In this document: positions 31,501-63,804 of the stretch, piece by piece | Layout of the letters: every line of letters begins with the position of its first letter | How positions within the stretch are numbered: position 1 is the first letter of the stretch | DNA from: Macrostomum lignano | Taxonomy: Eukaryota | Assembly: GCA_002269645.1 (NCBI GenBank) | Contig: NIVC01000135.1 | Span: forward strand, 1 to 64,000 | Length of the DNA: 64,000 bases | Reading direction: 5' to 3' | Notes under the pieces: generated by a model | What the model was told of the DNA's origin: nothing | The model's input: the letters and a program-made list of their open reading frames with translations, nothing else | The model's database searches: none | Made by a program: the position numbers and the translations under genes

Positions 31501-31504
31501 CTTT

Positions 31505-32193: not shown

Positions 32194-32194
32194 T

Positions 32195-33345: not shown

Positions 33346-33346
33346 A

Positions 33347-34313: not shown

Positions 34314-36186
34314 TCAGGTGAGCATGAGAATCTCCAGCTGTTTGAAGCTGTAGTACCTTCCATCAGTGATGTTTGTGGGGCATTGCGATACCAAAAGATG
34401 CCTTGGCCCGGTCTGCAGCTGACACATTCAGGGCTGCCGGGTAGTTGAAGTACTTGCCGAACGGACCGGAGTTGTGGCAGCATGCGTGCCAGTGAGGCTG
34501 CTCGTATTGCACTGCACAGTTACTAAAACAAACACTCAATCCGCGATCTCGAGTGACAAACTGCCTGTTCAATCCTTGAATCAGGCCGTCATCAAGGCCT
34601 CCAGCCGGTGCATAGGTGAAGGCAGAAATCGTGTAGTTGGTGCTCTCGGCCAGAATGAGCACGTTCAGGTAGTAGGCGTAGATGTAGGCGTCGTTCCAGT
34701 ACAGCAGTTCGACGCGGAACCGGTTGCTGGGCTGAGCGGTGGTCCGATTGTGCAGCCACTCCAGGCCTGGCGTTATGAAATTCGCAGGTAATGAAATTGC
34801 ATGTTGGTTCTCAACAATTGAACTAAATAAACAAGCCAGCGCACAGAGAAAGAAATCACTAGAGAGGGCCCCTTTTTAAAATTCCAATAGCAAATAACAA
34901 GCGGAACTTTCTGCAACTAGAAGAGACAATATTTCATATATGTGCCAGACCATTGGGGGTTTGGTTGATTGCCATGGCTCCAATTTATCACTTTTGTCAC
35001 ATCCAATTTGACTCCAACATCGAGTACTAGCATGTAGAATTGAAAGTTCCGCCTCACCAGCAAAGTAGTTGCCGTGATAAGTGCCGAAGCCGGCCTTGTA
35101 CTCGGCCCAGAGCCGGTCGAAGCTCAGCGCGTCCGACACTCGCAGGTTGACGGTCTCGAAGCACTGCTGAGTGCCCACAGTGTAGAACTCCTGCGTTTGA
35201 AGTTTGACGTGCAATGTAAAGAAAAGAGTCTACTGTGGTAGCCCTGATCAAGCACTGCTTTCCCAACACTCACATAGACGGCCAGCTCAGAGCTGTTTGG
35301 AGGCTGCTCGAACCAGCGGCACAGCGGGTAGTCGGTGAGCAGAGAGCAGTTGCTGGAGTTGAACACAATCCCGCGACAGGCCGGCACCTCGCTGCACTTG
35401 TCAACGCAGCGAACGAGCGATGAGACAGCCGGCTGGTGCTGAAGAAAGGCGGCGATGATCTTCACCGAGTTGCTGGGAATGTGGACCCGCTTGTGCGTCA
35501 CGTTCCGATCCACCAGGTACGCTGTGAAATATGGATTTTGGGGATGGATTTGATGGGCAATAATGTGAGAAAAGCTAGCATCAGCGTTGAAACTGGCTGG
35601 ATTGCATCAACCTTTCCATGCTTATAAGCATTCTAGAACCCATCGCTTAAACAGACCACAGGTGTAAGACTAGGTTTTCATCGAAAAACTCACCGAGTAG
35701 GCGTGCGGCGTCGGTGCCTCTGAGCAGCTGCTGCTCAAAGTCGCCAGCCTTCCAGATCTGTACACCGTACTCAGGCCGAATCTCCCTGGCAACAAAGCTG
35801 CTGCTGCTCAAGCCCGGCTCGCTCGCATTGTTGATGACGAGCACCTGGCATTCGAGGATCGCGGCTTCCTTAACGACTGCGACAGCGCAGAACGTTGCCC
35901 AGCACTTCCACAGGCAGAGAACATCTGATCGAACACCCGTCTCGTTGAGCAGCTCGCTGCTCACGTAGCTTCCGATGCCGATGAAGCCGCTGCTCACCCG
36001 ATGGTAGAAGCCTCCGGTGACGGCGCTTGGGTCTGCGGCGGAGACCACAGCTGAAAGGGGGGTGAGTGAGCAGTGAGTGAGTAGAGTCTCTCCATCAAGG
36101 TAGCACCATTTTCATGCAGACTCACCCGTGAGCAGCTGGCACAGAAGCAGCTGCAGCGGCTCGGACCGCTTGGCTGTCAGCTTCAT
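34314..36186 (-). pseudogene. PAN-PAN-FBG gene copy 1; last exon has two 1-bp deletions (pseudogene or homopolymer sequencing errors)
   Basis: Exons 36186-36126, 36050-35694, 35521-35274, 35190-35058, 34766-34314. It has gccttggccc versus gcctttggccc (~34405) and a shorter G-run (~34378) relative to copies 2 and 3, giving ...RAKASFGIAMPHKHH* instead of ...RAKGIFWYRNAP...LMLT*. Confidence 0.7.
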
Positions 36187-37099
36187 TGCAGGCAGCTGAG
36201 TTGCTGGGCAGATTTTACAGTCAGCGATCGGCTCTGCTGATGCGAGATGATCCGCGATGGAGCTCAGCTCCTGATGGGGCTCCTGAAATATGGGATTCTG
36301 CCGCCCCCAGAGCTGATAAATACAAGCTGGTTGCCAAGCGCCTGACAAACCACCCATCGCCGCTCTTTCTCCACTGTACACGGCTGTTTCGCAGTGCCCA
36401 GTTATGGTGCAGCGGCTCGGAAGCTATTGGTTCCAGGATTGGTCTAGTGATGGCTGTTTGGCCTGGGGCTGTCTTCCCATCTCTTCAACAACTGCTGTAC
36501 GCTCATGTCGAATCTTAGTTGTCTAGATTTTTACCCCTAACCCCTCCGCCTCCCGCCTTCTTTGGCTCTCTTGTCTCCATTAAATGATTGGCTAGCAACA
36601 GCATGGCAACAAGCAGCATTCCCTGTGCGAGAAAAGTGTGGACTAAGGCAGAAAGATACGACTGAGAGTTGACGACGCCTCTTGGCGTTTATTAGATCAG
36701 CATTCAGGCTGTCTGGCTTGGGGCAGCTTCCTATGTGTTTATCAACTGCTGGGTGCTCATGTCGAGTCTTTATGGTTGGGTGGCTTGGTCTTCTCCTGCT
36801 CCACCTCTTCGCCTCCCACCTACCCTGTCTCTTTTGCTTCTATTAAACTACCGGCTATCAACAGCTAGAATAGCAACAAGCAGCATTTCTTGGGCGAATG
36901 TGCTTAGTTAACAATTGCTTGAAATATTTTCAGCTTAATTTGATGGGCAAAGAATATTATTTAGAACTCAATTCCAAAAAAATTTACAAGAAAAAGACGC
37001 AAAGCTTAAAAGTAAATTTAATTGTCATTTAGGGTCAGATGGCACGCCGCACCTCGAGCGAGCGTTCCAAATGTTAAAGAAGTCAGCCTTCAATCTAGT

Positions 37100-37260
37100 A
37101 ATTCTCCTTATTGCACGGCAGCTGCGGTGCGAGCTTCTGGAGTCCGCAAATTTGGGCCATCCGGGCATTGTAGGACCAAACAGCAGCTTCGCGAATTCAC
37201 CTGTTGGCCAAGCATGGACGCCTACATTGAAACGTTCGTCAGAGATACTCTGATGTCCCC
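37100..37260 (+). mobile_element. Gypsy integrase zinc-binding domain remnant (also ~45990-46150 and ~54590-54750)
   Basis: Frameshifted ELLESANLGHPGIVG / TKQQLREFTCWPSMDAYIETFVRD resembles the HxGHPGIxxTKxxxRxxxWWPxMxxDIxxFVxxC motif. Confidence 0.8.
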
Positions 37261-38307
37261 GCGACCCTGGGTCCCGCGTCCCTTTGTGGTTTGCCCACAA
37301 TCCTTTATCATGGCTTTTGAATATGGATAAAAAACAATGGATAAGACTTCAACCTATTGGTAGGGCCCTTCTAAACTTTAACCTTAGTCCAAGGCCGGTT
37401 CCGCTGGCAGATCCCAACCGGAGTTCTTGAAACCAATAAGGTGCCCTCGAAAAACCTGATGGCCCTGCCGGTGGATCAAAGTTAACCGCTAGCTCTGAAC
37501 CGAATCGGGCAGCTCGAATGGCTCAAACGCACTGACATCGCCCAAGAACCCCTCTGCAAACAAGCTGGCACAGATTGGCGCCACAGTCCACAGTTAAGCC
37601 TCAGAAGTGCAGATTTCAAGCAGAGAAACTGACTAACGGTCACCGTTGTTGTATTCATGTTTGAATAAAAAGTTGCTGAATATGCAGTGCATATATAAAT
37701 TGTTCTACTGAACAGAATAAAAAGAAAAAACTATGAGGAAGGTACAGGGTCTCGGGTACGAAATTAAGCGCAAATGTATTTTTTTAAGTACGTTGACGCA
37801 TGTCTTAAGGCTGTAGCAGTAGGTATGGCATCTGTGGTATCTGTTTTGAGCAAGTTCGAAATGTAAGCTTAATTATGGGGTAATAGAACGCATTAAAAAC
37901 AGAATTCCAATTAATTTTATCCCCCTAAGGGACTTAGCTAGTCAATATGATACTAAACTATTTTTGTAATATCCCTTAATTCGTTTATTGCTATCGAATG
38001 CTGTAAAATAATGCAAACGAGCGTACTAAAACTTAATTATAAAGAGCTAAAACTCATTTCCACCTGATCAACTAAGAAAGCAATTTGTGGATGAAACTGA
38101 CAGCCTTCGCGAGTGCTGCACTCTAGAATAAGGAGCACAAGAATTAACAACAAACAAAAGATTGACATACTGGTGGTACAAATTCAAAGCTGCATACGCA
38201 AAGTAAGATATTTTAGTTTAAATTATCAGATAACTTGTTCACAAACAGGTGTCATATTATTAGAATGGTCGCTGAATAGGCTTTGCTGGTGCCGCATATA
38301 TTCTAAA

Positions 38308-38575
38308 GGGTTTTAGCCTAGTGTTTAGTGACTCGCGACAGAAAGGTCGGAGGTTCGAAGTTCGAACCCCTCGAAACAACTTGTGCCCTTAAGCAAGACA
38401 CTTAACTCTGCACTACTTTAGTTCACCCAGCTGTAAAATGGGTGCCAACATTTGCTGGGGTAATTGAGGGTGTGGCGACCCCCCCCCCCCGTCCTTGGAC
38501 TAAACAGCCGTACGCAGCCTTCAGATGTACCGCGCAATAGGTGCGGCTGAGCTTCGGTTGCGACAAATTACTGTA
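38308..38575 (+). mobile_element. tRNA-derived CORE-SINE, unit 1
   Basis: A-box tagcctagtgtttag and B-box gttcgaaccc, then gtgcccttaagcaagacacttaactc...cagctgtaaaatggg, matching the MIR/CORE domain (gtgaccttgggcaagttacttaac...catctgtaaaatggg). Confidence 0.8.
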
Positions 38576-39299
38576 GACTGATGCATGCGGTGTTTTTCAC
38601 TTGACCCGTTATCAAGTACAAATTCCTTGATATGTGATGCCGCATGACGTAGGCACATGTAAGACTCTGAAGTCAATTATAATTAGCTGCAAACCTTACA
38701 ACCAAGTTGAGCTTGTCTTGACTCCAAGGAAACCCAACTTGCGTGAACTATAATTGGAATATTGACGATTGAATTCGTCAAATTGGGTGCCTTAGAAGAC
38801 TCCATATAAACTCAAAATAAATGCACAAAAAGAGTGAAAGACAATGCAAGCGGTTGCCATAGCGACTATATAGAGGGCAGGCTGCGACCAGAAGAACAGA
38901 GGATCTCAGCGATGTCATGCGAGTGTATCTCAGAACATCAAATTTGTCTCATTGGCAGCAAAGGCTAAATAAGAATGACTTGAGTAGAACGCAAAGAGGT
39001 TGTGAACTTAAGCGCGATTTGGAAGCCGTGAGTCCAGCAACCAAACCGCTGCGAAATTCTCACTATTCAGACCCAAAATAGACAAGAAAAGTGTAATTAA
39101 TCTTTCTTCCACCCCGGCCGCTTCCGCATGGGATAAATGGGGAAAATTGGGGATTTCATGTGAACTTAAGGCTCTGAAATGGAAGCGGTGGCCGATTGAC
39201 CCAAAATTGACCCAAATTGCAAAATAACAATTCAATAACAATATAGAAACTAATGCAGTCAATTTACAACAAAATACACGCAAAGATGCTCACACTACA

Positions 39300-39844
39300 C
39301 AGCACTGATCTAGGGACTTTACCAGCACTGATCTAGGGACTCTACCAGCACTGATCTAGGGACTCTACTAGCACTGATCTGGGGACTCTACTAGCACTGA
39401 TCTGGGGACTCTACTAGCACTGATCTAGGGACTCTACTATCACTGATTTAGGGACTCTACCAGCACTGATCTAGGGACTCTACTAGCACTGATCTGGGGA
39501 CTCTACTAGCACTGATCTAGGGACTCTACTAGCACTGATATAGGAACTCTACCAGCACTGATCTAGGGACTTTACCAGCACTGATCTAGGGACTCTACTA
39601 GCACTGATCTAGGGACTCTACTAGCACTGATCTGGGGACTCTACTAGCACTGATCTAGGGACTCTACTAGCACTGATATAGGGACTACTAGCACTGATCT
39701 AGGGACTCTACCAGCACTGATTTAGGGACTCTACTAGCACTGATCTATGAACTCTACTAGCACTGATCTAGGGACTCTACTAGCACTGATATAGGGACTC
39801 TACTAGCACTGATCTAGGGACTCTACTAGCACTGATTTAGGGAC
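39300..39844 (+). repeat. 23-bp minisatellite, unit 2
   Basis: Same unit and variant order as the 3' part of 31505-32193. Confidence 0.96.
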
Positions 39845-39845
39845 T

Positions 39846-40995
39846 TGTAGTTTACGACCTTCTTTGCCTTCACGCTATTCTCTGACTAGGCGCTTTAGCC
39901 CTCTGTCCAACGTGCACTAGCACTGGCCCCGTCAACGTAACACGTCTGTATCCGCACGTCGGCAGTGAGTCTATATATATAGCTCAAATATGCAGTCCAC
40001 GAGACCAGGTTTTTCGCCACACACAAGCGCACTACAATTGCATCGCAAGCAAGCCTCCCACACCGCCCCCATTGAACTTGCGCGAGGAGCCCCATGCGGC
40101 ACATACAAAGTGGAGCAAGTGTTGGCTCAGTTCCGCAGCTGTTCGCCGCGGCCGCTGACATCTCTGACAAGAGGCGACTTCGCCAACTCCTTCTATACAC
40201 AGCGAGCGAGGACCTACAGGCCATTGCAGCCGGTATCGCCGAAGCCGGTGATGACGTCGACAAGCTCATCAAGGCTCTCAATGAGCACTTCATCAGCCAG
40301 CTCAACTTGCCCTTCACCCGCTACCAGTTCCGTCTGTGCATCCAGCAAACCGGAGAGTCCCTGGACGACTGGATGCGGCGGCTCAGCGACACCGCGGACT
40401 GCTGCAAATTTGAAGGCCTCCGGGACTTGCTGATCCGCGACCAGCTGATTTCCGGCTGCAGCTCCGAGCAGCTCCGCAGGAAGCTGCTGGCCATGGACAA
40501 CGTGGACCTGGGCCAGGCGGTCCGGGTGGCCAGGGCCATGGAGGCAGCTGAGGCGCAGGCCAGCCTCATGGAGACCAGCGCAGCGACCGTGCAACGGCTG
40601 TGGAAGCGCGAGTTCAGGCCATGCGCCTCAGGGACGCCAGCACCAGCTCAATCAATCAGTTGGGATCGTCTTTAATATGATTGAACAATGCTACATTCTC
40701 CAGCGAGCAAACATGCATGTATAGTGACTGATAAAGCAGACCTCAATGACTACCCAAGTATATTTCAAGGATAACAAGTTGGCAATAAAATCTCTATAAC
40801 TGCGCGGCAATGGCCTCCTGTTCTCCGGTTGCTCAGGCTTCTTCTCAAACTCGCGCGTCGACATCGCGCGTCGACATGTGTGATGCTTCTTCCGCGGACG
40901 TACGCGATATCGTAGTCGAAAGCGGCCAGTTGGATCGCCCACCGCGTGATTCTCGCCGACGGGACATTCCGGATCTCCGTGGCTAGGCTGGAGGA
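39846..40995 (+). mobile_element. Gypsy LTR plus truncated gag (+) and inverted RNase H fragment (-), unit 2
   Basis: Duplicate of 32195-33345 (offset 7651); identical 193-aa gag ORF at 40094. Confidence 0.85.
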
Positions 40996-41745
40996 CAAAG
41001 ATGAACAGTGGAGCACAGAGATGAGTACAGTGGAGCACAGAGATGAGTACAGTGGAGCACAGAGATGATTACAGTGGAGCACAGAGATGAGTTCAGTGGA
41101 GCACAGAGATAAACAGTGGAGCACAGAGATAAACAGTGGAGCACTGAGATGAGTTCAGTGGAGCACAGAGATGAGTACAGTGGAGCACAGAGATACACAG
41201 TGGAGCACAGAGATGAGTACAGTGGAGCACTGAGATGAGTACAGTGGAATACAGAGATGAGTACAATGGAACACAGAGATGAGTACAATGGAACACAGAG
41301 ATGAGTACACTGGAACACAGAGATGAGTACAATGGAACACAGAGATGAGTACACTGGAACACAGAGATGAGTACAGTGGAGCACAGAGATGAGTACAGTG
41401 GAGCACAGAGATGAGTACAGTGGAACACAGAGATGAGTACACTGGAACACAGAGATGAGTACACTGGAACACAAAGATGAGTACACTGGAACACAGAGAT
41501 GAGTACAGTGGAGCACAGAGATGAGTACAGTGGAACACAGAGATGAGTACAGTGGAGCACAAAGATGAGTACACTGGAACACAGAGATGAGTACAGTGGA
41601 GCACAGAGATGAGTACAGTGGAACACAGAGATGAGTACAGTGGAGCACAAAGATGAGTACACTGGAACACAGAGATGAGTACAGTGGAGCACAGAGATGA
41701 GTACAGTGGAACACAGAGATGAGTACAGTGGAACACAGAGATGAG
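40995..41745 (+). repeat. 22-bp minisatellite, unit 2
   Basis: About 34 units; variant order appears the same as in 49605-50355. Confidence 0.96.
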
Positions 41746-43197
41746 CAGTGCAGCGAGATTAAGATGATTGAGAAGTGTAAGAACTTTTACCAAGTGACAT
41801 TGGATATGAAATATAAGTTCTGTTTAATAAGACATACTTTGTTTCTTTATTTTGGCACCCAAGACTTATCTATCAGGCAAAAGTTACTTCAAAGGTTAAA
41901 AAAACATATCGGATTTTGATGCGGCCTCGCTAAGGACATCCTCTCTGCTGATAAAATTAGCTCTATCTTTGATTAGTGCTAACTAACTTAGTGCATCATA
42001 AGTATCATTAGCTTAGTTGGCATTAGTTAGTTGATCATCAATATTTGGATAAGAGTTTCCAACTCTGATGAATTCAGCTGCTTGATCGAGGTTGGATGAG
42101 CAAGTGGAGCTTTTTTACGTCTTATTTAAATGTAACTGCAACCCCGATAGGAGTATTGCTTATGATAGTATTGATAATAAATGTGATATACCCTGGTCAG
42201 GCTCGTTTGAAGAGGAAAACTGCCTCTTGAGCCTTAGCGTGCGACGTCAGAGCCATAGGCTCAGCAAATTCTGCAAATTAGAAATAGCATTTTATAGCTG
42301 GCAACATTCAGATTCGCATTAGTTTTGGATATTCCGCCAGTTTTATCCTTTGCAAACAAGTTTCTGGCCTTGAGGGCTCTTAACGAATCTAAATAGCTTC
42401 CAGGAGGCTCGCGCCAAACAACAGTGGATGCATGAGGTGTGAAATCAAACAGGATTAATGGACTTGCATTATCTTCTGTTTGCAAAAATGTTTTCTCATT
42501 TTCCTGAGTATGCACGGATACGAACTCAGGCAAGCACTTAAAAGGGATACCTTCTCATCGTGAGGCATGAAATCCCCAACTTCATGTGGGCTGCGCGGGG
42601 ACTCGAACCCCAGATATAAATGCAGGCTGCTAAGCTCGTCTTCCAAACAAGCAGAGTGCCAGAGGAACTACTAAGTCCAGGATTTTTCTCGTGATGATAG
42701 ATCACGAGCTGTCTGCACAAAAATAGTGATAGAAAGCACAAGCGGTTGCCATAGCGACTTTGTAGTGGGCAGGCTGAGACCAGAAAGAAGGGAGGATCTC
42801 AGCGGTGGGATGCGAGTGTAATTTAGGAGTCAGGACACAAAATTTGTCTCACTGCCATGAGATAGAAGTAAGCATGCATAGAGACATGATTAGCTGTGTG
42901 GTGCCTCGAGACTGACGGCTCAAATTTAGCGCGAAAGGCGAGAGGGCGGTCAGGGGGTGCATGGATCAGTGAGAAGAGGAGTTGAAGAATCCTACTCAAC
43001 CGCGACTGCATAAACAATTTCAAAATTTCTGTTTCAATTTAGCACTGCAACTCTGTACTATTTCAATGTATCAGTTCATGACTTTCACGACAGTGGGCTT
43101 CACGTAGTCTCAATGCTCTGCAAAATATCATATGCCAAAAGACGTCGAAAACTTTGCCAAACACCAGGCACTGGCTCGTCTCATAGCTCAATGACGT

Positions 43198-45072
43198 TCA
43201 GGTGAGCATGAGAATCTCCAGCTGTTTGAAGCTGTAGTACCTTCCATCAGTGATGTTTGTAGGGGCATTGCGATACCAAAAGATGCCTTTGGCCCGGTCT
43301 GCAGCTGACACATTCAGGGCTGTTGGGTAGTTGAAGTACCTGCCGAACGGACCGGAGTTGTGGCAGCATGCGTGCCAGTGAGGCTGCTCGTATTGCACTG
43401 CACAGTTACTAAAACAAACACTCAATCCGCGATCTCGAGTGACAAACTGCCTGTTCAATCCTTGAATCAGGCCGTCATCAAGGCCTCCAGCCGGTGCATA
43501 GGTGAAGGCAGAAATCGTGTAGTTGGTGCTCTCGGCCAGAATGAGCACGTTCAGGTAGTAGGCGTAGATGTAGGCGTCGTTCCAGTACAGCAGGTCGACG
43601 CGGAACCGGTTGCTGGGCTGAGCGCTGGTCCGATTGTGCAGCCACTCCAGGCCTGGCGTTATGAAATTCGCAGGTAATGAAATTGCATGTTGGTTCTCAA
43701 CAATTGAACTAAATAAACAAGCCAGCGCACAGAGAAAGAAATCACTAGAGAGGGCCCCTTTTTAAAATTCCAATAGCAAATAACAAGCGGAACTTTCTGC
43801 AACTAGAAGAGACAATATTTCATATATGTGCCAGACCATTGGGGGTTTGGTTGATTGCCATGGCTCCAATTTATCACTTTTGTCACATCCAATTTGACTC
43901 CAACATCGAGTACTAGCATGTAGAATTGAAAGTTCCGCCTCACCAGCAAAGTAGTTGCCGTGATAAGTGCCGAAGCCGGTCTTGTACTCGGCCCAGAGCC
44001 GGTCGAAGCTCAGCGCGTCCGACACTCGCAGGTTGACGGTCTCGAAGCACTGCTGAGTGCCCACAGTGTAGAACTCCTGCGTTTGAAGTTTGACGTGCAA
44101 TGTAAAGAAAAGAGTCTACTGTGGTAGCCCTGATCAAGCACTGCTTTCCCAACACTCACATAGACGGCCAGCTCAGAGCTGTTTGGAGGCTGCTCGAACC
44201 AGCGGCACAGCGGGTAGTCGGTGAGCAGAGAGCAGTTGCTGGAGTTGAACACAATCCCACGACAGGCCGGCACCTCGCTGCACTTGTCAACGCAGCGAAC
44301 GAGCGATGAGACAGCCGGCTGGTGCTGAAGAAAGGCGGCGATGATCTTCACCGAGTTGCTGGGAATGTGGACCCGCTTGTGCGTCACGTTCCGATCCACC
44401 AGGTACGCTGTGAAATATGGATTTTGGGGATGGATTTGATGGGCAATAATGTGAGAAAAGCTAGCATCAGCGTTGAAACTGGCTGGATTGCATCAACCTT
44501 TCCATGCTTATAAGCATTCTAGAACCCATCGCTTAAACAGACCACAGGTGTAAGACTAGGTTTTCATCGAAAAACTCACCGAGTAGGCGTGCGGCGTCGG
44601 TGCCTCTGAGCAGCTGCTGCTCAAAGTCGCCAGCCTTCCAGATCTGTACACCGTACTCAGGCCGAATCTCCCTGGCAACAAAGCTGCTGCTGCTCAAGCC
44701 CGGCTCGCTCGCATTGTTGATGACGAGCACCTGGCATTCGAGGATCGCGGCTTCCTTAACGACTGCGACAGCGCAGAACGTTGCCCAGCACTTCCACAGG
44801 CAGAGAACATCTGATCGAACACCCGTCTCGTTGAGCAGCTCGCTGCTCACGTAGCTTCCGATGCCGATGAAGCCGCTGCTCACCCGATGGTAGAAGCCTC
44901 CGGTGACGGCGCTTGGGTCTGCGGCGGAGACCACAGCTGAAAGGGGGGTGAGTGAGCAGTGAGTGAGTAGAGTCTCTCCATCAAGGTAGCACCATTTTCA
45001 TGCAGACTCACCCGTGAGCAGCTGGCACAGAAGCAGCTGCAGCGGCTCGGACCGCTTGGCTGTCAGCTTCAT
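43198..45072 (-). CDS. Secreted fibrinogen-related protein: signal peptide + 2 PAN/apple-like domains + FBG domain, copy 2 (417 aa, intact)
   Basis: Exons 45072-45012, 44936-44580, 44407-44160, 44076-43944, 43652-43198 (1254 nt, GT-AG, phases consistent). Signal-like MKLTAKRSEPLQLLLCQLLTAVVSA; PAN-like CLWKCWATFC...ECQV and SLVRCVDKCSEVPACRGIVFNSSNCSLL; FBG motifs FDRLWAEYKTGFG, YFAGLEWLH, FVTRDR, NCA, WHACCHNSGPFG, GIFW, KQLEILML. Confidence 0.88.
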
Positions 45073-47194
45073 TGCAGGCAGCTGAGTTGCTGGGCAGATT
45101 TTACAGTCAGCGATCGGCTCTGCTGATGCGAGATGATCCGCGATGGAGCTCAGCTCCTGATGGGGCTCCTGAAATATGGGATTCTGCCGCCCCCAGAGCT
45201 GATAAATACAAGCTGGTTGCCAAGCGCCTGACAAACCACCCATCGCCGCTCTTTCTCCACTGTACACGGCTGTTTCGCAGTGCCCAGTTATGGTGCAGCG
45301 GCTCGGAAGCTATTGGTTCCAGGATTGGTCTAGTGATGGCTGTTTGGCCTGGGGCTGTCTTCCCATCTCTTCAACAACTGCTGTACGCTCATGTCGAATC
45401 TTAGTTGTCTAGATTTTTACCCCTAACCCCTCCGCCTCCCGCCTTCTTTGGCTCTCTTGTCTCCATTAAATGATTGGCTAGCAACAGCATGGCAACAAGC
45501 AGCATTCCCTGTGCGAGAAAAGTGTGGACTAAGGCAGAAAGATACGACTGAGAGTTGACGACGCCTCTTGGCGTTTATTAGATCAGCATTCAGGCTGTCT
45601 GGCTTGGGGCAGCTTCCTATGTGTTTATCAACTGCTGGGTGCTCATGTCGAGTCTTTATGGTTGGGTGGCTTGGTCTTCTCCTGCTCCACCTCTTCGCCT
45701 CCCACCTACCCTGTCTCTTTTGCTTCTATTAAACTACCGGCTATCAACAGCTAGAATAGCAACAAGCAGCATTTCTTGGGCGAATGTGCTTAGTTAACAA
45801 TTGCTTGAAATATTTTCAGCTTAATTTGATGGGCAAAGAATATTATTTAGAACTCAATTCCAAAAAAATTTACAAGAAAAAGACGCAAAGCTTAAAAGTA
45901 AATTTAATTGTCATTTAGGGTCAGATGGCACGCCGCACCTCGAGCGAGCGTTCCAAATGTTAAAGAAGTCAGCCTTCAATCTAGTAATTCTCCTTATTGC
46001 ACGGCAGCTGCGGTGCGAGCTTCTGGAGTCCGCAAATTTGGGCCATCCGGGCATTGTAGGACCAAACAGCAGCTTCGCGAATTCACCTGTTGGCCAAGCA
46101 TGGACGCCTACATTGAAACGTTCGTCAGAGATACTCTGATGTCCCCGCGACCCTGGGTCCCGCGTCCCTTTGTGGTTTGCCCACAATCCTTTATCATGGC
46201 TTTTGAATATGGATAAAAAACAATGGATAAGACTTCAACCTATTGGTAGGGCCCTTCTAAACTTTAACCTTAGTCCAAGGCCGGTTCCGCTGGCAGATCC
46301 CAACCGGAGTTCTTGAAACCAATAAGGTGCCCTCGAAAAACCTGATGGCCCTGCCGGTGGATCAAAGTTAACCGCTAGCTCTGAACCGAATCGGGCAGCT
46401 CGAATGGCTCAAACGCACTGACATCGCCCAAGAACCCCTCTGCAAACAAGCTGGCACAGATTGGCGCCACAGTCCACAGTTCAGCCTCAGAAGTGCAGAT
46501 TTCAAGCAGAGAAACTGACTAACGGTCACCGTTGTTGTATTCATGTTTGAATAAAAAGTTGCTGAATATGCAGTGCATATATAAATTGTTCTACTGAACG
46601 GAATAAAAAGAAAAAACTATGAGGAAGGTACAGGGTCTCGGGTACGAAATTAAGCGTAAATGTATTTTTTTTAAGTACGTTGACGCATGTCTTAAGGCTG
46701 TAGCAGTAGGTATGGCATCTGTGGTATCTGTTTTGAGCAAGTTCGAAATGTAAGCTTAATTATGGGGTAATAGAACGCATTAAAAACAGAATTCCAATTA
46801 ATTTTATCCCCCTAAGGGACTTAGCTAGTCAATATGATACTAAACTATTTTTGTAATATCCCTTAATTCGTTTATTGCTATCGAATGCTGTAAAATAATG
46901 CAAACGAGCGTACTAAAACTTAATTATAAAGAGCTAAAATTCATTTCCACCTGATCAACTAAGAAAGCAATTTGTGGATGAAACTGACAGCCTTCGCGAG
47001 TGCTGCACTCTAGAATAAGGAGCACAAGAATTAACAACAAACAAAAGATTGACATACTGGTGGTACAAATTCAAAGCTGCATACGCAAAGTAAGATATTT
47101 TAGTTTAAATTATCAGATAACTTGTTCACAAACAGGTGTCATATTATTAGAATGGTCGCTGAATAGGCTTTGCTGGTGCCGCATATATTCTAAA

Positions 47195-48454: not shown

Positions 48455-48455
48455 T

Positions 48456-51805: not shown

Positions 51806-53675
51806 TCAGGTGAGCATGAGAATCTCCAGCTGTTTGAAGCTGTAGTACCTTCCATCAGTGATGTTTGTGGGGGCATTGCGATACCAAAAGATGCCTTTGG
51901 CCCGGTCTGCAGCTGACACATTCAGGGCTGCCGGGTAGTTGAAGTACTTGCCGAACGGACCGGAGTTGTGGCAGCATGCGTGCCAGTGAGGCTGCTCGTA
52001 TTGCACTGCACAGTTACTAAAACAAACACTCCATCCGCGATCTCGAGTGACAAACTGCCTGTTCAATCCTTGAATCAGGCCGTCATCAAGGCCTCCAGCC
52101 GGTGCATAGGTGTAGGCAGAAATCGTGTAGTTGGTGCTCTCGGCCAGAATGAGCACGTTCAGGTAGTAGGCGTAGATGTAGGCGTCGTTCCAGTACAGCA
52201 GGTCGACGCGGAACCGGTTGCTGGGCAGAGCGCTGGTCCGATTGTGCAGCCACTCCAAGCCTAGTGTTATGAAATTCGCAGGTAATGAAATTGCATGTTG
52301 GTTCTCAACAATTGAACTAAATAAACAAGCTAGCGCACAGAGGAAGAAATCACTAGAGAGGGGCCCCTTTTTACAATTCCAATAGCAAATAACAAGCGGA
52401 ACTTTCTGCAACTAGAAGAGACAATATTTCATATATGTGCCAGACCATTGGGGGTTTGGTTGATTGCCATGGCTCCAATTTATCACTTTTGTCACATCCA
52501 ATTTGACTCCAACATCGAGTACTAGCATGTAGAATTGAAAGTTCCGCCTCACCAGCAAAGTAGTTGCCGTGATAAGTGCCGAAGCCGGTCTTGTACTCGG
52601 CCCAGAGCCGGTCGAAGCTCAGCGCGTCCGACACTCGCAGGTTGACGGTCTCAAAGCACTGCTGAGTGCCCACAGTGTAGAACTCCTGCGTTTGAAGTTT
52701 GACGTGCAATGTAAAGAAAAGCGTCTACTGTGGTAGCCCTGATCAAGCAATGCTTTCCCAACACTCACATAGACGGCCAGCTCAGAGCTGTTTGGAGGCT
52801 GCTCGAACCAGCGGCACAGCGGGTAGTCGGTGAGCAGAGAGCAGCTGCTGGAGTTGAACACAATCCCGCGACAGGCCGGCACCTCGCTGCACTTGTCAAC
52901 GCAGCGAACGAGCGATGAGACAGCCGGCTGGTGCTGAAGAAAGGCGGCGATGATCTTCACCGAGTTGCTGGGAATATGGACCCGCTTGTGCGTCACGTTC
53001 CGATCCACCAGGTACGCTGTGAAATATGGATTTTGGGGATGGATTTGATGGGCAATAAGGTGAGAAAAGCTAGCATCAGCGTTGAAACTGGCTGGATTGC
53101 ATCAACCTTTCCATGCTTATGCTAGAACCCATCGCTTAAACAGACCACAGGTGTAAGACTAGGTTTTCATCGAAAAACTCACCAAGTAGGCGTGCGGCGT
53201 CGGTGCCTCTGAGCAGCTGCTGCTCAAAGTCGCCAGCCTTCCAGATCTGCACACCGTACTCAGGCCGAATCTCCCTGGCAACAAAGCTGCTGCTGCTCAA
53301 GCCCGGCTCGCTCGCATTGTAGATGACGAGCACCTGGCATTCGAGGATCGCGGCTTTTTTGACGACTGCGACAGCGCAGGACGTTGCCCAGCACTTCCAC
53401 AGGCAGAGAACATCTGATCGAACACCCGTCTCGTTGAGCAGCTCGCTGCTCACGTAGCTGCCGATGCCGATGAAGCCGCTGGTCACCCGATCGTAGAGAC
53501 CTCCGGTGAGGGCGCTGGGGTCTGCGGCGGAGACCACAGCTGAAAGGGGTGTGAGTGAGCAGTGAGTGAGTAGAGTCTCTCCATCAAGGTGGCACCATTT
53601 TCATGCAGACTCACCCGTGAGCAGCTGGCACAGAAGCAGCTGCAGCGGCTCGGACCGCTTGGCTGTCAGCTTCAT
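51806..53675 (-). CDS. PAN-PAN-FBG gene copy 3 (intact)
   Basis: Exons 53675-53615, 53539-53183, 53016-52769, 52685-52553, 52260-51806; open reading frame throughout. Confidence 0.88.
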
Positions 53676-55959
53676 TGCAGGCAGCTGAGTTGCTGGGCAG
53701 ATTTTACAGTCAGCGATCGGCTCTGCTGATGCGAGATGATCCGCGATGAAGCTCAGCTCCTGATGGGGCTCCTGAAATATGGGATTCTGCCGCCCCCAGA
53801 GCTGATAAATACAAGCTTGTTGCCAAGCGCCTGACAAACCACCCATCGCCGCTCTTTCTCCACTGTACACGGCTGTTTCGCAGTGCCCAGTTATGGTGCA
53901 GCGGCTCGGTAGCCATTGGTTCCTTGATTTGGGGGCGGTGATGGCTGTTTGGCCTGGGGCTGTCTTCCCATCTCTTCAACAACTGCTGTACGCTCATGTC
54001 GAATCTTAGTTGTCTAGATTTTTACCTCTAACCCCTCGGCCTCCCTCCTTCTTTGGCTCTCTTGTCTCCATTAAATGATTGGCTAGCAACAGCATGGCAA
54101 CAAGCAGCATTCCGTGAGCGAGAAAAGTGTGGACTAAGGCAGAAAGATACGACTGAGAGTTGACGACGCCTCTTGGCGTTTATTAGATCAGCATTCAGGC
54201 TGTCTGGCTTGGGGCAGCTTCCTATCTGTTTATCAACTGCTGGGTGCTCATGTCGAGTCTTTATGGTTGGGTGGCTTGGTCTTCTCCTGCTCCACCTCTT
54301 CGCCTCCCACCTACCCTGTCTCTTTTGCTTCTATTAAACTACCGGCTAGCAACAGCTAGCATAGCAACAAGCAGCATTTCCTGGGCGAATGTGCTTAGTT
54401 AACAATTGCTTGAAATATTTTCAGCTTAATTTGATGGGCAAAGAATATTATTTAGAACTCAATTCCAAAAAAATTTACAAGAAAAAGACGCAAAAGCTTA
54501 AAAGTAAATTCAATTGTCATTTAGGGTCAGATGGCACGCCGCACCTCGAGCGAGCGTTCCAAATGTTAAAGAAGTCAGCCTTCAATCTATTAATTCTCCT
54601 TATTGCACGGCAGCTGCGGTGCGAGCTTCTGGAGTCCGCAAATTTGGGCCATCCGGGCATTGTAGGACCAAACAGCAGCTTCGCGAATTCACCTGTTGGC
54701 CAAGCATGGACGCCTACATTGAAACGTTCGTCAGAGATACTCTGATGTCCGCGACCCTGGGTACCGCGTCCCTTTGTGGTTTGCCCACAATCCTTTATCA
54801 TGGCTTTTGAATATGGATAAAAAACAATGGATAAGACTTCAACCTATTGGTAGGGCCCTTCTAAACTTTAACCTTAGTCCAAGGCCGGTTCCGCTGGCAG
54901 ATCCCAACCGGAGCTCTTGAAACCAATTAGGTGCCCTCGAAAAACCTAATGGCCCTGCCGGTGGATCAAAGTTAACCGCTAGCTCTGAACCGAATCGGGC
55001 AGCTCGAATGGCTCAAACGCACTGACATCGCCCAAGAACCCCTCTGGAAACAAGCTGGCCCAGATTGGCGCCACAGTCCACAGTTCAGCCTCAGAAGTGC
55101 AGATTTCAATTCTCTGTAACTCTGCAGCTTTGAACTTCTAAAGTTTCCCTAAACTGTGTAATCGATAGGGTTGAGGTCTGTGTCAATTTATTAATTATTT
55201 AAATAGCGCATTTTTCAACCCCCACCCAGCACAAGGTGGAGGCATGCCTTCCAAAACGTTTTCCAAAGATTTAGTGATCATGATCAGTGACCAAATTATA
55301 AGCAGAGAAACTGTCTAACGGTCACCGTTGTTGTATTCATGGTTAAATAAAAAGTTGCAGAATATGCAGTGCATATATAAATTGTTCTACTGAACAGAAG
55401 AAAAAGAAAAAACTATGAGGAAGGTACAGCGTCTCGGGTAGGAAATTAAGCGCAAATGTATTTTTTAAAGTACATTGACGCATGTCTTAAGGCATGGCAT
55501 CTGTGGTTTCTGTTTTGAGCAAGTTCGAAATGTAAGCTTAATTATGGGGTAATAGAACGCATTAAAAACAGAAGTCCAATTAATTTTATCCCCCTAAGGG
55601 ACTTAGCTAGTCAATATGATACTAAACTATTTTTTGTAATATCCCTTAATTCGTTTATTGCTATCGAATGCTGTAAAATAATGCAAACGAGTGTACTTAA
55701 ATTTAATTATAAAAAGCTAAAACTCATTTTCACCTGATCAACTAAAAAAGCCATTTGTGGATGAAACTGACAGCCTTCGCGAGTGCTGCACTCTAAAATA
55801 ATGAGCACAAGAATTAGCTCCTTGGTGGTACAACTTCAAAGCTGCATACACAAAGTTAGATATTTTTGTTTGAATTATCAGATAAATTTTTCACAAACAG
55901 GTGTTATATTATTAGAATGGTCTCTGAATAGGCTTTGCTGGTGCCGCATATATTCTAAA

Positions 55960-57132: not shown

Positions 57133-59070
57133 TCAGGTAAGCATGAGAATCTCCAGCTGCTTGAAGCTGTAGTACCATCCATCGGTGATGTTTGTGGGGG
57201 CATTGCGTCTCCAAACGATGCCCTTGGCTCGGCTTCGAGCTGGCACATTCAGCGCTGTCGGGTAGTTGAAGTACTTGCCGAACGGACCTGAGGCATGGCA
57301 GCATGCGTGCCAGTGAGGCTGGTGCATTTCAGCACAGTTCTGTCCACCTTTGCATCTACTCGATCCACGGTCTCGAGTCTGAAACTGGATTTTCCTGCCA
57401 CCGAACAAGTTCTGGCGAAGACCTCCAGCAGCCTGAAACCTAAAGTCAGACAACATGTAGTTGGTGCTCTCGGCTTGAATGAGCACGTTCAGGTAGTAGG
57501 CGTAGATGTAGGCGTCGTTCCAGTACAGCAGGTCGACGCGGAACCGATTCTTAGGCTGAGCACTTGTCCGGGCGTGCAGCCACTCCAAGCCTTGCGTTAT
57601 GAAATTCGCAGGCAATGAAATGGCATGTTGGTTCTTGATGAGAGAACCAGTTGTTGATTCGTCATACAGTGGAAAACAAAGCTCACAAGGGAAGAAGTCA
57701 CTAGAAAAGGGGGTCCTTTTTACAATTGCATTCCAAAGTTCAGATTTTGATTTCGATATTTCACAGACGATATTGATACGAGTATATGAAATCGCTGAGG
57801 CTTTAGTTTGGTTAGTTACATTATTCTTATTTGACACTTGAGGTTTGTCGACACAGTGGTTTATGACATCGAGTATTAGCATGCAGAATTCGCTCGTAAA
57901 AAGCTCCGCCTCACCAACGAAGTAGTTGCCGTGATAAGTGCCGAAGCCGGTCTTGTACTCGGCCCAGAGCCGGTCGAAGCTCAGCGTGTCCGATACTCGC
58001 AGGTTGACGGTCTCGAAGCACTGCTGAGTGCCGACGGTGTAGAACTCCTGCGTTTTGCAATTAAAACGATTTATTCGATCGGCTATCAATAAAAATGCCT
58101 AAATGATGTCAGCGATCAAGCACTGCTTTCCCAACACTCACATAGACGGCCAGCTCAGAGCTGCCCGGCGGCTGCTCGAACCAGCGGCACAGCGGGTAGT
58201 CGGTGAGCAGAGAGCAGTTGCTGGAGTTGAACACAATCCCGCGACAGGCCGGCACCTCGCTGCACTTGGCAACGCAGCGAACGAGCGATGAGACAGCCGA
58301 CTGGTGCAGAAGGAATGCGGCAAAGATCTTTACCGAATTGTTAGGAATGTGGAGCCGCTTGTGAGTCACGTTCCTAGCCGCCAGGTACTCTGTGAAAGAT
58401 TGATATTTTGGGTTGGATTTGATGATCTAGGTCAGCAGCACGCAACAGCAGCAGCAGCATGCATCAGCACTGAGACTGCTGGATTACATCAACCTTTCGA
58501 TGCTTATAACCATGCTAGAACTCATTGCCTTAACAGATAAGGTGAGCTCAGGTGTAAGCCTAGGTTTCCATCGCAAAACTCACTGCGCGCGGCGTCGATG
58601 CCGCTAAGCAGCTGCTGCTCAAAGTCGCCAGCCTTCCAGATCTGCACACCGTACTCAGGTCGAATCTCCCTGGCAACAAAGCTGCTGCTGCTCAAGCCCG
58701 GCTCGCTCGCATTGTTGATTACGAGCACCTGGCATTCGAGGATCGCGGCTTCCTTAACGACTGCGACAGCGCAGGACGTTGCCCAGCACTTCCACAGGCA
58801 GAGAACATCTGATCGAACACCCGTCTCGTTGAGCAGCTCGCTGCTCACGTAGCTGCCGATGCCGATGAAGCCGCTGGTCACCCGATCGTAGAGACCTCCG
58901 GTGACGGCGCTTGGGTCTGCGGCGGAGACCACAGCTGAAAGGGGTGTGAGTGAGCAGTGAGTGAGTAGAGTCTCTCCATCAAGGTAGCACCATTTTCATG
59001 CAGACTCACCCGTGAGCAGCTGGCACAGAAGCAGCTGCAGCGGCTCGGACCGCTTGGCTGTCAGCTTCAT
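57133..59070 (-). CDS. PAN-PAN-FBG gene copy 4 (intact, divergent FBG P subdomain)
   Basis: Exons 59070-59010, 58934-58584, 58389-58142, 58047-57915, 57590-57133. FBG segment YMLSDFRFQAAGGLRQNLFGGRKIQFQTRDRGSSRCKGGQNCAEMHQPHW. Confidence 0.88.
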
Positions 59071-61010: not shown

Positions 61011-61962
61011 TTGAGACAACAAACGCAGACTGGCGCATGCAATGTTTTTCACTTCACCCATTGATCAGTTCCAAATTCCCTGATGTGTGATGCAGCATGA
61101 CGTAGGCACATGTAAGACTCTTAAGGTCAATTCTAATTAGCTGCAAACCTTACAACCAAGTTAAGCTTATCTTGACTCCAAGGAAACCCAATTTTCTAAA
61201 ACTATAATTGAAGGATTGACGAATTGAATTCGTAAAAATAAGTAATGTTAAAAGACTCCGTACAAGCACAAAATAAATGCACATAAAGAGTGAAAGACAA
61301 CACAAGCGGTTGTCATAGCGACTATATAGAGCGCAGTCTGCGACCAGAAGAAGAGGGGATCTCAGCGATGTCATGCGAGTGTATTTCAGGACATCAAATT
61401 TGTCTCATTGGCAGCAAAGGCTAAATAAGAATGACTTAAGAAAAACAGAAAAGTACAATTAAGAGCAAAGAGTGCAGCCGATACGAAGCATAAGAGGAAT
61501 GAAACAAAAGATGCATGCATTGAAATCTTGATGACACATCAAAGAAGAGAAAAAGCTATTGATTGCCACTACGAGCTAATTTGAGAATTTTGAAAAGTTG
61601 ATTGTTTTATTGTACGTGTAGAATTAAATATATTGTACTAACGAGATGTTTAGCAGTGCAGTGCTTCGAGATTGGGGGCTCAAATTTAGCACGAGTGCGG
61701 TTGAGACACGGAGAGAGCATAAGGATAAAAAAGAGAGAAGGGAAGGAGAAGAAAGATAAGGAAAAAGGGAGGATAAGCAAGGGAGATTTAAACTCTGTTT
61801 AAATTTAGCCCTGTGACTGTTCCACTCTGCTATTCAATGCAGCAATTCATGCTTTTCTCAAGAGTGGGCTTCACATAGTCTCAATGCTCTGCAAAATACC
61901 CAGTATTAAAGAAAAACACGACAAAACAATTGAAACACGACGGCACTGGCTGACGTTGACGT

Positions 61963-63804
61963 TCAGGTGAGCATGAGAATCTCCAGCTGCTTGAAGCTGT
62001 ACAAGAACCCATCAGTGATATTTTTGGGAGCATTGCAAGCCCAGACGATGCCCTTGGCTCGGCTTTTAGCTGGTACATTCAGCGCTGTCGGGTAGTTGAA
62101 GTACCTGCCGAACGGACCGGAGTTGTGGCAGCAATTGTGCCAGTGAGGCTGCTGGTGAACAATCGCACAGTTGTGTATGCAGTTGTTCCATCCGCGATCT
62201 CGAGTGATGAACTGCCTGTTTTTCCTTTGAATTAGACAGTCCCTAAGGCCTCCAGCAGGCACGTGGGTGTAATCAGAAAACGTGTAGTTGGTGCTCTCGG
62301 CTTGAATGAGCACGTTCAGGTAGTAGGCGTAGATGTAGGCGTCGTTCCAGTACAGCAGGTCGACTCGGAACCGGTTGCTGCTGGGCTGAGCGCTGGTCCG
62401 TGCGTGCAGCCACTCCAGGCCTGAAATTCGCAGGTAATGAAATTGCGCTTTGGTTCTGATCTTAACAAGTGAACCAGTTGTCGATTCAGTGGCGCATCAA
62501 GCACATTAAGAAGAAGTCACATGAACACTGAGCCCATTTTTATTATTATTAGTAGAAAGCTACAAGCAGCACTTTCTGATACTATAAGACGATGTTTCAT
62601 GAGCTAAACCATTAAGACTTTCATTGCTGTCAATGATTCTTATTTCTTGCTTTTATTTTGTCGATACAGAAATTTATGACATCAAGGATAGAATATACAA
62701 TAAAAAGCTCCGCCTCACCAGCAAAGTAGTTGCCGTGATAAGTGCCGAAGCCGGTCTTGTACTCGGCCCAGAGCCGGTCGAAGTTCAGCGCGTCCGATAC
62801 TCGCAGGTTGACGGTCTCGAAGCACTGCTGAGTGCCCACAGTGTAGAACTCCTGAGTTTGGAGTTTGATGTGCAATGTAAAGAAACGTGTCTGCAGGGAT
62901 AGCCCTGATCAAGCAATGCTTTCCCAACACTCACATAGACGGCCAGCTCAGAGCTGCCCGGCGGCTGCTCGAACCAGCGGCACAGCGGGTAGTCGGTGAG
63001 CAGAGAGCAGCTGCTGGAGTTGAACACAATCCCGCGACAGGCCACCACCTCGCTGCACTTGTAAACGCAGCCAACGAGCGATGAGACAGCCGGCTGGTGC
63101 AGAAGGAATGCGGCGAAGATCTTCACCGAGTTGTTGGGAATGTGGACCCGCTTCAGAGTCACGTTCCGATCCACCAGGTACTCTGTGAGATGGATATTTG
63201 GGGTTGGATTCTATGGGAATTACGGTGAGAACAGGCTGCATCATCGCTGAAACAAGCTGGATTGCATCAACATTTTCATGCTGGAACTCATCACCTTAAA
63301 AAGGTACTAAAACTCACTGCGCTCGGGGTCAGTGCCTCTGAGCAGCTGCTGCTCAAAGTCGCCAGCCTTCCAGATCTGCACACCGTACTCAGGCCGAATC
63401 TCCCTGGCAACAAAGCTGCTGCTGCTCAAGCCTGGCTCGCTCGCATTGTTGATTACGAGCACCTGGCATTCGAGGATCGCGGCTTCCTTGACGATTGCGA
63501 CAGCACATAACGTTGCCCAGCACTTCCACAGGCAGAAAACGCTTGATTGAATGCCTGTCGCGTTTAGCAGCTCGCTGCTCACGTAGCTGCCGATGCCGAT
63601 GAAGCCGCTGCTCACCCGATGATAGAAGCCTCCGGTGACGGCGCTAGGGTCTGCGGCGGAGACCACAGCTGAAAGGGGTGTGAGTGAGCAGTGAGTGAGT
63701 AGAGTCTCTCCATCAAGGTGGCACCATTTTCATGCAGACTCACCCGTGAGCAGCTGGCACAGAAGCAGCTGCAGCGGCTCGGACCGCTTGGCTGTCAGCT
63801 TCAT
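61963..63804 (-). CDS. PAN-PAN-FBG gene copy 5 (intact, divergent FBG P subdomain)
   Basis: Exons 63804-63744, 63668-63318, 63182-62935, 62851-62719, 62420-61963. FBG segment YTFSDYTHVPAGGLRDCLIQRKNRQFITRDRGWNNCIHNCAIVHQQPHWHNCCH. Confidence 0.88.

Follow-up and report, generated by a model that had tools for sequence, protein, structure and literature searches.

How can the members of a tandem gene family stay nearly identical over most of their length and yet differ strongly in one short block? The question is raised by a 64,000-nt stretch of the genome of the flatworm Macrostomum lignano (NCBI GenBank assembly GCA_002269645.1, contig NIVC01000135.1, positions 1 to 64,000 of the forward strand), which we refer to as the window. 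Its right half carries five tandem copies of one gene, all on the minus strand, whose product consists of a signal peptide, two cysteine-rich modules and a C-terminal fibrinogen-type (FBG) globe. Based on our analysis, we believe that these copies probably belong to a tandem family restricted to Macrostomum and encoding secreted, ficolin-like recognition proteins, in which alternative ligand pockets are set on a homogenized scaffold.

We read the exon borders of copy 2 base by base and carried them over to the other copies by MAFFT alignment. All five copies have an identical five-exon layout in which every intron is GT-AG, and the starts of successive copies are 8886, 8603, 5395 and 4734 nt apart. 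We number the copies c1 to c5, and refer to c1-c3 as type A, c4 as type B and c5 as type C. Copy 2 (43198..45072, minus strand; exons 45072-45012, 44936-44580, 44407-44160, 44076-43944 and 43652-43198), whose GT-AG introns were read directly, is intact and encodes 417 aa. Also intact are copy 3 (51806..53675, minus strand; exons 53675-53615, 53539-53183, 53016-52769, 52685-52553 and 52260-51806; 417 aa), copy 4 (57133..59070, minus strand; exons 59070-59010, 58934-58584, 58389-58142, 58047-57915 and 57590-57133; 416 aa) and copy 5 (61963..63804, minus strand; exons 63804-63744, 63668-63318, 63182-62935, 62851-62719 and 62420-61963; 416 aa). Copy 1 (34314..36186, minus strand), modeled from its alignment to copy 2 (exons 36186-36126, 36050-35694, 35521-35274, 35190-35058 and 34766-34314), has two 1-nt homopolymer deletions in exon 5, near 34404 and 34376, which shift the frame so that the protein runs into a premature stop directly after ...DRAKASFGIAMPHKHH. 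Because of these deletions copy 1 is not complete as assembled. The original prediction of five complete five-exon genes on the minus strand was thus correct in the number of copies, the strand and the exon structure, but only four of the five are intact.

Between c1 and c2, all of the substitutions (7/7) fall in the coding exons (1254 nt) and none in about 1050 nt of introns and flanks, and three of the seven are amino-acid changes seen in c1 alone. Patchy conversion and the decay of c1 would each account for this distribution.

The five copies share one and the same exon 1, and in comparisons between them 0-2 of the 75 nt in intron 1 differ. The claim that the copies are nearly identical in signal peptide, PAN exons and intron 1 therefore stands for exon 1 and intron 1, but the PAN exons have only 91-96% nucleotide identity among the three lineages. 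Introns 2-4 differ by 11-37% between lineages. The ~230 nt upstream of copy 2 (45073..45302, minus strand), a putative promoter and 5' untranslated region, are equally conserved ahead of every copy, with 0-8.7% difference among the five, and cannot be aligned with the locus of another M. lignano paralogue, P0002 (distance 0.40). A relic of the gene had also been predicted within the array, at 34314-63804. It exists, but it lies outside this interval at 30643..31502 (minus strand), where tblastn and translation recovered exon 3 in its 3' half (31502-31380) and, beyond an enlarged intron, exon 4 (30771-30643), which ends in a stop. The relic adjoins a 23-nt satellite, and its sequence is also contained in P0005, a fused gene model.

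The signal peptide, assigned by eye, is MKLTAKRSEPLQLLLCQLLTAVVSA, with AD following directly after the cut. Module 2 (residues 140-222) scores 23.1 bits against PAN_1 (cutoff 21.4) when scanned alone, and 19.5 bits, which is below threshold, in a scan of the full-length protein. Module 1 (residues 21-139) has no match to PAN or to any other Pfam family. It does have a PAN-like C-x3-C-x4-C-x12-C pattern, and hhalign aligned its C-x3-C core to module 2 in a weak match (probability 1.4%, E 0.036). Over both N-terminal modules (residues 31-229) the AlphaFold2 (AF2) predicted local distance difference test (pLDDT) score is below 50. Of the predicted PAN-PAN-fibrinogen order, the second PAN module and the FBG domain are the verified parts and module 1 is the part lacking a PAN match; we consider the secreted PAN-PAN-FBG architecture plausible.

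Fibrinogen_C (PF00147) matches the C-terminal part with 63-72 bits (cutoff 22, E 8e-20), in copy 2 over residues 236-412. The match covers profile positions 46-215 of 221, in contrast to canonical relatives, which match positions 2-220, and since it starts at position 46 the FBG domain is without its N-terminal part. The AF2 model was made from a 66-sequence alignment that does not contain the spliced c4 and c5 proteins. Its FBG residues (230-417) have pLDDT values of 86-97, and the best Foldseek match is the L-ficolin head (target-normalized TM-score 0.75, root-mean-square deviation 1.6-2.7 A), with L-ficolin, fibrinogen gamma and angiopoietin as top matches, all with probability 1.00 and target-normalized TM-scores of 0.7-0.75. 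The predicted FBG identity is borne out by this fold.

In the HMMER alignment to ficolin-2, a 15-residue stretch of ficolin-2 pairs with TRDRGLSVCFSNCAV. Here the ficolin-2 motif TKDQDND is aligned to TRDRGLS, in which the second and third Asp are replaced by G and S/N; TRDRG is invariant in the family. The residues D224 and D226 of ficolin-2, which we take to be Ca2+ ligands, fall on this G and S/N, and therefore the canonical Ca2+ site is gone. The NC-A and C-C-H motifs of the P subdomain align to the NCA and NCH motifs of ficolin-2, and C350 and C363 are almost invariant across the 66-sequence alignment. Two residues further along, the former Ca2+ loop contains one additional conserved Cys, and the pocket His is preceded by a CC doublet; together these suggest an added disulfide. 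In the Pfam scan there was no Collagen match at E up to 1, although the collagen-FBG relative P0107 has one, and no match to an Ig family.

The chief difference among the copies is a variable block of 45-46 codons in the last exon. In copy 2 (TISAFTY...NCAVQYEQ) it lies at 43384..43518 on the minus strand, and its equivalents, on the same strand, lie at 34498-34632 (copy 1), 51992-52126 (copy 3), 57319-57456 (copy 4) and 62149-62283 (copy 5). Copies 2 and 5 differ at 19 of 46 aligned block residues. At the wider limits used in the original prediction we reproduced its count of 20 of 51, against three differences in the preceding 45 residues (two substitutions and one indel). Amino-acid differences cluster in the block (Fisher p 7e-8 to 9e-12), and the in-frame +2/-1 residue indels reported for copy 4 are present there. 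Averaged over columns in nine family lineages, entropy reaches 1.20 bits inside the block, compared with 0.35 before it and 0.49 after it. The block has the same borders throughout these lineages, and within it GGL, F-TRDRG, C and NCA never vary. In the remainder of the P subdomain (PHWHACCH...LMLT in copy 2, 43198..43383, minus strand) variable positions are scattered. The window holds three block types, and among the available M. lignano proteins there are at least eight open ones.

In the same ficolin-2 alignment the block corresponds to 45 ficolin-2 residues and to the first half of the ficolin/fibrinogen P subdomain, running from the last strand of the B subdomain through the former Ca2+ loop to the residues past the conserved Cys. 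The loop and short helix of this region presumably line the ligand pocket, as in ficolins, tachylectin-5A and fibrinogen gamma. The +4 position after the conserved Cys is Y, H, H or F depending on the block type, and we take it to be the equivalent of two pocket residues, Tyr210 of tachylectin-5A and Asp330 of fibrinogen gamma. This mapping is based on the ficolin-2 alignment and on the residue numbering of fibrinogen gamma and tachylectin-5A. The variable region had been described as the P subdomain with its Ca2+ loop and Cys-His pocket; its placement and the Cys-His pair agree with our alignment, but the Ca2+-binding Asp residues are absent. The extra cysteines covary, with DCL or NCL in the block accompanied by WAC (c5, P0153) or CHC (P0003, P0007), which suggests lineage-specific extra disulfides around the pocket.

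The block also differs in composition. Its GC content at third codon positions (GC3) is 0.46-0.54, versus 0.75-0.93 in the homogenized exons, while GC at first and second positions is flat; the introns have 0.36-0.46 GC. The GC3 dip is compatible with GC-biased conversion or with stronger codon selection outside the block.

The closest database proteins are all from M. lignano, with 78-89% identity. In a HMMER search of 1.84 billion representatives, five proteins only (P0002, P0004, P0005, P0006 and P0007) had E <1e-30. Three of them (P0002, P0004 and P0006) belong to M. lignano. P0005, a fused gene model of 3025 aa, joins units like c5, c4 and c3 to the relic and to reverse-strand sequence of the neighboring gene, and P0007 is encoded on an environmental metagenome contig of 687 nt. 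The remaining matches are ordinary FBG proteins with about 30% identity. Distant matches that reach into module 2 were considered as PAN-FBG relatives and rejected, as they proved to be full-length FBG proteins without PAN. Judging from these searches, the family appears to be restricted to Macrostomum. Searches of the literature, with supplementary tables outside their scope, returned no description of FBG, FREP or lectin families in flatworms or in Macrostomum.

An intact paralogue, P0002, is found at a second M. lignano locus (L001, 10001-12195, plus strand). In P0002 and in P0003, also from M. lignano, exons 3-4 are near-identical to those of the window copies, but exon 2 is entirely different and encodes a PAN-like module with weak PAN_1 matches (P0002 E 0.054, P0003 E 0.007), so this is a family with two interchangeable first modules. 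Beside P0002 there is a decayed paralogue (L001, 4221-3316, minus strand) that has lost the end of exon 4 together with most of intron 4; an in-frame stop separates CCHT from GPFG, and TRDRG is mutated to TGDRG. Given that an intact and a decayed copy occur together at L001, birth-and-death turnover is real, and with the relic and the frameshifted copy 1 it supports the proposal of a tandem family of secreted-type PAN-FBG genes that evolves by birth and death. The environmental relative, P0007 (L002, 1-687, from ENA metagenome scaffold ERZ23496033), has the same layout of exon 4, intron and exon 5, with a phase-1 intron of 72 nt. Its pocket block is very different from those of the window and has a similar GC3 dip (0.70, 0.43, 0.58).

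What holds the rest of the gene together? Between types, the nucleotide distance is 0.29-0.42 in the block versus 0.01-0.10 in exon 4 and the start of exon 5. Copy 2 and P0002 differ by 0.8% in exon 4 and 3% at the start of exon 5, yet their introns 2 and 4 are unalignable and their exons 2 are non-homologous. In every lineage, conservation carries on for 28 nt inside intron 3, past which there is an abrupt split into two haplotype classes. Copy 4 is nearest to P0002 in intron 3 (0.14) and in the block (0.21), compared with 0.32 and 0.40 to copies 1-3, and the likelihood of the block alone prefers a tree joining c4 and P0002 by about 15 log-likelihood units. Conversion tracts reach p=0.0002-0.001 in a run-length permutation test, and in exon 2 a tract shared by c3 and c4 spans 20 polymorphic sites (p=0.0002). 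In copy 3, which is otherwise ~98.6% like copy 2, this exon (53539-53183) contains 133 nt identical to copy 4 (GGLYDRVTSG..ATSC), a clear case of local gene conversion between neighbors.

The comparison with L002 is the decisive control. In exon 4 and the start of exon 5, the M. lignano paralogues differ from L002 at a proportion of silent sites (pS) of 0.65-0.69, which is saturated, with a proportion of replacement sites (pN) of 0.26, but from each other at a pS of only 0.02-0.18. In the block, pS is 0.51-0.63 among the M. lignano paralogues and 0.56-0.82 against L002. Because the flanking codons are saturated at silent sites in the comparison with L002, they are not unusually constrained. 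We therefore rejected codon-usage constraint as the main cause of the low synonymous divergence in the flanks, and conservation that enters the introns speaks against it as well. A recent duplication followed by local hypermutation is likewise disfavored, since paralogues with near-identical exons 3-4 have unalignable introns and non-homologous exons 2. The pattern is one of concerted evolution by interlocus gene conversion, with one short island that has escaped it. Such mosaic divergence is also what models of tandem paralogues under gene conversion yield (10.1101/2025.10.29.685298). As a mechanism, tandem duplication and decay would combine with conversion under which paralogues remain near-identical in promoter, exon 1, intron 1 and the bulk of their exon sequence; one block of ~140 nt would escape homogenization, with a divergence almost as old as that to the relative from another species, and the outcome would be a constant scaffold with alternative pocket sequences. 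Exchange may also reach into exon 5, as sub-blocks occur in conflicting combinations (in P0153, block 1 is like c4, block 2 like c5 and block 5 like c2), 109 among 325 informative site pairs conflict with any single tree, and a test resembling the pairwise homoplasy index (PHI) gave p 0.012-0.09 at the protein level. We regard these observations as hints.

We compared synonymous (dS) and nonsynonymous (dN) divergence along the gene. By the Nei-Gojobori method, dS is 0.8-1.7 in the block versus 0.12-0.23 in the remainder of exons 3-5, a ratio of 4-14 (Fisher p for the synonymous excess 1e-4 to 3e-9). The ratio dN/dS (omega) is 0.28-0.69 in the block versus 0.25-0.50 elsewhere, with no significant difference in 8 of 10 pairs. 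Both block differences between c2 and c3 are non-synonymous. Because dS in the block is raised like dN, the contrast between block and flanks is largely a contrast in homogenization and not one of selection on the protein.

Site models (M0 with a single omega, M1a with a neutral class in addition, and M2a with a further class of omega above 1) were fitted to five sequences with a home-made Goldman-Yang codon program. For the block alone with its own branch lengths, M0 gave an omega of 0.47 and a tree length of 3.2 substitutions per codon. Under M1a, 44-47% of block sites have an omega of about 0.06 and 53-56% an omega of 1, and M2a found no class with omega significantly above 1 in the block (likelihood-ratio test statistic [LRT] versus M1a 0.26-0.57, top class omega 1.2-1.3). 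With a pairwise omega of 0.28-0.69 and an M0 omega of 0.47, dN/dS in the block is below one, and a value at or below 1 was what the original prediction had listed as speaking against it. With dS raised as much as dN, diversifying selection is not established for the block as a whole. When one tree is used over exons 3-5, M2a versus M1a gives an LRT of 50 with 13 'selected' sites. This whole-gene site test had been proposed as M7 versus M8 and was run here as M1a/M2a; its result is nominally positive but is confounded by synonymous-rate heterogeneity and recombination, and the LRT of 50 risks being an artefact because both the synonymous rate and the tree change along the gene. When the segment that follows the block is given separate branch lengths, M2a versus M1a under three topologies gives an LRT of 13.2-18.0 (p <=0.0014), with recombination uncontrolled. 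Four sites in this segment (WH-x-CC, NVxx-x-xR, W-x-xNAP and DG-x-Y) have an omega of about 7-10 with posteriors >0.9, and they flank the Cys-His pair. The signal comes from five sequences only and is suggestive. Because these four sites keep an omega above 1, selection on pocket residues is still plausible, and for the block itself we consider diversifying selection plausible but unproven.

Copies 1-3 lie in a segmental tandem repeat of 8.6-8.9 kb units (31642..53903, unstranded), found by self-BLAST, with its satellites found by Tandem Repeats Finder (TRF). The type-A units are 97.7-99.5% identical over their full length, including the intergenic satellites, and therefore the window has three pocket types (A, B and C) and not five. 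Each unit holds one 23-nt and one 22-nt satellite array, at 31505-32194 and 33346-33813, 39301-39845 and 40989-41745, and 48187-48455 and 49599-50355, respectively. The 23-mer is present in 30, 24 and 12 copies per unit, and the 22-mer arrays include an identical pair. Between the genes, the repeated unit also holds a 193-aa open reading frame at 40094-40675 (plus strand), with a copy at 48686-49282 (plus strand), and a minus-strand open reading frame at 40765-41124 that includes RITRWAIQLAAFDYDIAYVRG. By eye these two (40094-40675 plus and 40765-41124 minus) look retroelement- or gag-like, an assignment we dropped as they have no Pfam match.

Why does the island persist? We infer that it does so because homogenized pockets are disfavored, although there are two ways to arrive at such an island: selection against homogenized pockets, which raises linked silent divergence too, or a passive block to conversion. 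A selective explanation in the sense of the original prediction would be an arms-race receptor, whose block owes its hypervariability mainly to recurrent positive (diversifying) selection for amino-acid change. We hold this to be possible, but would commit to it only tentatively. The coincidence of the block with pocket-forming loops in the ficolin-2 alignment, its common borders in all lineages, the four nearby sites (LRT 13-18), the two non-synonymous c2-c3 differences and the covarying extra Cys, which suggests that function is kept, all argue for it, and theory and modeling of gene conversion predict that linked neutral divergence is raised around selected differences (bioRxiv 10.1101/2025.10.29.685298). 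However, block omega is like that of the rest of the gene in most pairs, the block-only M2a is not significant, silent divergence is raised as much as replacement divergence, and the whole-gene LRT is confounded. The passive alternative, which strikes us as somewhat unlikely, is a tolerant loop under relaxed constraint in redundant copies, where the diverged block stops heteroduplex formation and the flanks alone are homogenized. The fit of more than half of the block codons to an omega of 1, the intron-like GC3, the tolerance of indels, and the frameshifted copy and pseudogenes all argue for it. It is at odds with the ~45% of block codons at omega ~0.06, with GGL, F-TRDRG, C and NCA kept in spite of saturated dS, with the sites of omega >1 directly downstream, and with at least eight block types with intact open reading frames. 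A mutational or templated mechanism that actively shuffles sub-blocks among paralogues and pseudogenes, possibly somatically, would account for the conflicting combinations such as P0153 and the incompatible site pairs, and relics and pseudogenes are close by. Somatic diversification has been reported for snail FREP3. The recombination signal here is weak and at the protein level only, ordinary germline conversion and homoplasy suffice to explain it, and we find active diversification extremely improbable. No repeat, hairpin or comparable trace of a mechanism came to light, though no search was aimed at one.

The array itself could also be smaller than it appears, if copies 1-3 were uncollapsed haplotypes or over-expanded repeats. 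The units that carry them are 98.5-99.5% identical together with their intergenic DNA, two of their 22-nt arrays are identical, both copy 1 lesions are homopolymer length changes typical of long-read consensus errors, and the older fused model P0005 has c5-like and c4-like units and one c3-like unit before the relic. The units differ, though, in 23-mer copy number, in unit-specific substitutions and in the c4-derived tract of c3, so we think an assembly artefact unlikely; c4 and c5 are in any case clearly separate genes, and the family and its variable block stand without copies 1-3. Several points weigh against our preferred explanation, a homogenized scaffold with alternative pockets. A neutral barrier, in which the diverged block stops conversion, accounts for the island equally well, and there is no significant omega >1 in the block itself. 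The codon models rest on five sequences and a home-made implementation, strong codon bias could add to the low dS of the flanks, and copies 1-3 may be an assembly expansion, as P0005 has just one type-A unit. Describing the proteins as secreted lectin-like binders, as we infer them to be, rests on domain homology and a signal peptide assigned by eye, and with the Ca2+ site missing and the A subdomain truncated, ficolin-type binding of acetylated sugars is not to be assumed. In favor of function are the strong constraint on ~45% of block codons although dS is saturated, the eight or more open block types and the covarying Cys. An immune, a reproductive and a mucus or matrix role may all be considered as candidates; rapidly evolving secreted proteins are typical of Macrostomum reproduction.

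The proteins would work most like FBG lectins of the ficolin, tachylectin-5A and FIBCD1 type. They share the FBG fold, with L-ficolin as the best match in both sequence and structure, and the family has kept the P-subdomain disulfide (NCA...C-H) and the pocket His, with the variable block ending in C-A-x-x-(Y/H/F). In contrast to these lectins, the first ~45 FBG profile positions are missing, both Ca2+ Asp are replaced, GGWW has become PHWH and SNLNG has become NSGPFG, and there is an extra Cys pair. Where ficolins have a collagen-like stalk, this family has PAN modules. Lacking a collagen stalk and a Ca2+ site, and with the A subdomain truncated, they cannot be classed as ficolins.

Molluscan FREPs and FReDs are likewise lophotrochozoan, secreted, multigene FBG proteins thought to diversify recognition. 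A combination of PAN/Apple and FBG has been reported for one Biomphalaria FREP, four Crassostrea genes and some Lottia FReDs, and gene conversion has been implicated in FREP diversity (PMC7588048). Snail FREPs have immunoglobulin superfamily (IgSF) domains and a coiled-coil interceding region, neither of which occurs here, and their diversified part is mainly IgSF1 and not the FBG P subdomain; without IgSF domains, the M. lignano proteins are not snail FREPs. Lineage-specific FBG expansions are common in invertebrates. The mosquito, Drosophila and oyster FBG families (FBN/FREP) are tandem expansions of this kind, encoding short secreted proteins under birth-and-death evolution, but in contrast to the present family their FBG domains are full-length and have Ca2+ sites, and PAN modules are usually absent. 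Diverged segments in otherwise conversion-homogenized genes are found likewise in the Arabidopsis halleri HMA4 triplicate (10.1101/2025.10.29.685298) and, reportedly, in the vertebrate TLR1 family (PMC3125219). Compared with these two, the island in M. lignano is very short (~140 nt), is common to all members across loci, lies on the ligand-pocket block and coincides with a drop in GC3 from ~0.85 to ~0.5. Three features are noteworthy in M. lignano: the Ca2+ site is lost, PAN modules form the scaffold, and the island of divergence is very sharp. PAN plus FBG itself is known from molluscs.

Long satellite arrays (TRF) crowd the left half of the window, at 5811-8160, 9385-10015, 14871-16086, 21236-23235, 25150-26285 and 28266-30231. 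These are, respectively, 83 copies of a 28-nt repeat, 23 of a 28-nt repeat, 55 of a 22-nt repeat, 87 of a 23-nt repeat, 59 of a 19-nt repeat and 10.7 of a 183-nt repeat (99% identity). The 28-nt array is open in several reading frames and gives rise to spurious open reading frames of 800-900 aa. Exons of a Suppressor-of-forked/CstF-77 homologue are found at 20289-23682 (plus strand; Pfam Suf 2.6e-48 and 5e-26), and one of its introns is filled by 2 kb of the 23-nt satellite.

To our knowledge, very little is known about the pattern-recognition or other extracellular recognition molecules of free-living flatworms. A combinatorial repertoire in which short-tract conversion, possibly also somatic, shuffles FBG pocket sub-blocks on a PAN-FBG scaffold seems to us quite improbable; if true, the shuffled pocket would be a platyhelminth analogue of snail FREP diversification, located on a lectin pocket rather than on IgSF. 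For the study of gene families more generally, the locus is a clean natural island of divergence within concertedly evolving paralogues, with silent sites near saturation and GC3 at the intron level inside it, and flanking exons that are near-identical even where introns are unalignable. It also carries a caution: run on the whole gene, the standard PAML site test would yield a strong signal of positive selection, and would do so on mistaken grounds. Given that M. lignano is transgenic and tractable by RNA interference, the family offers a small, testable set of candidates with at least eight pocket variants on one scaffold.

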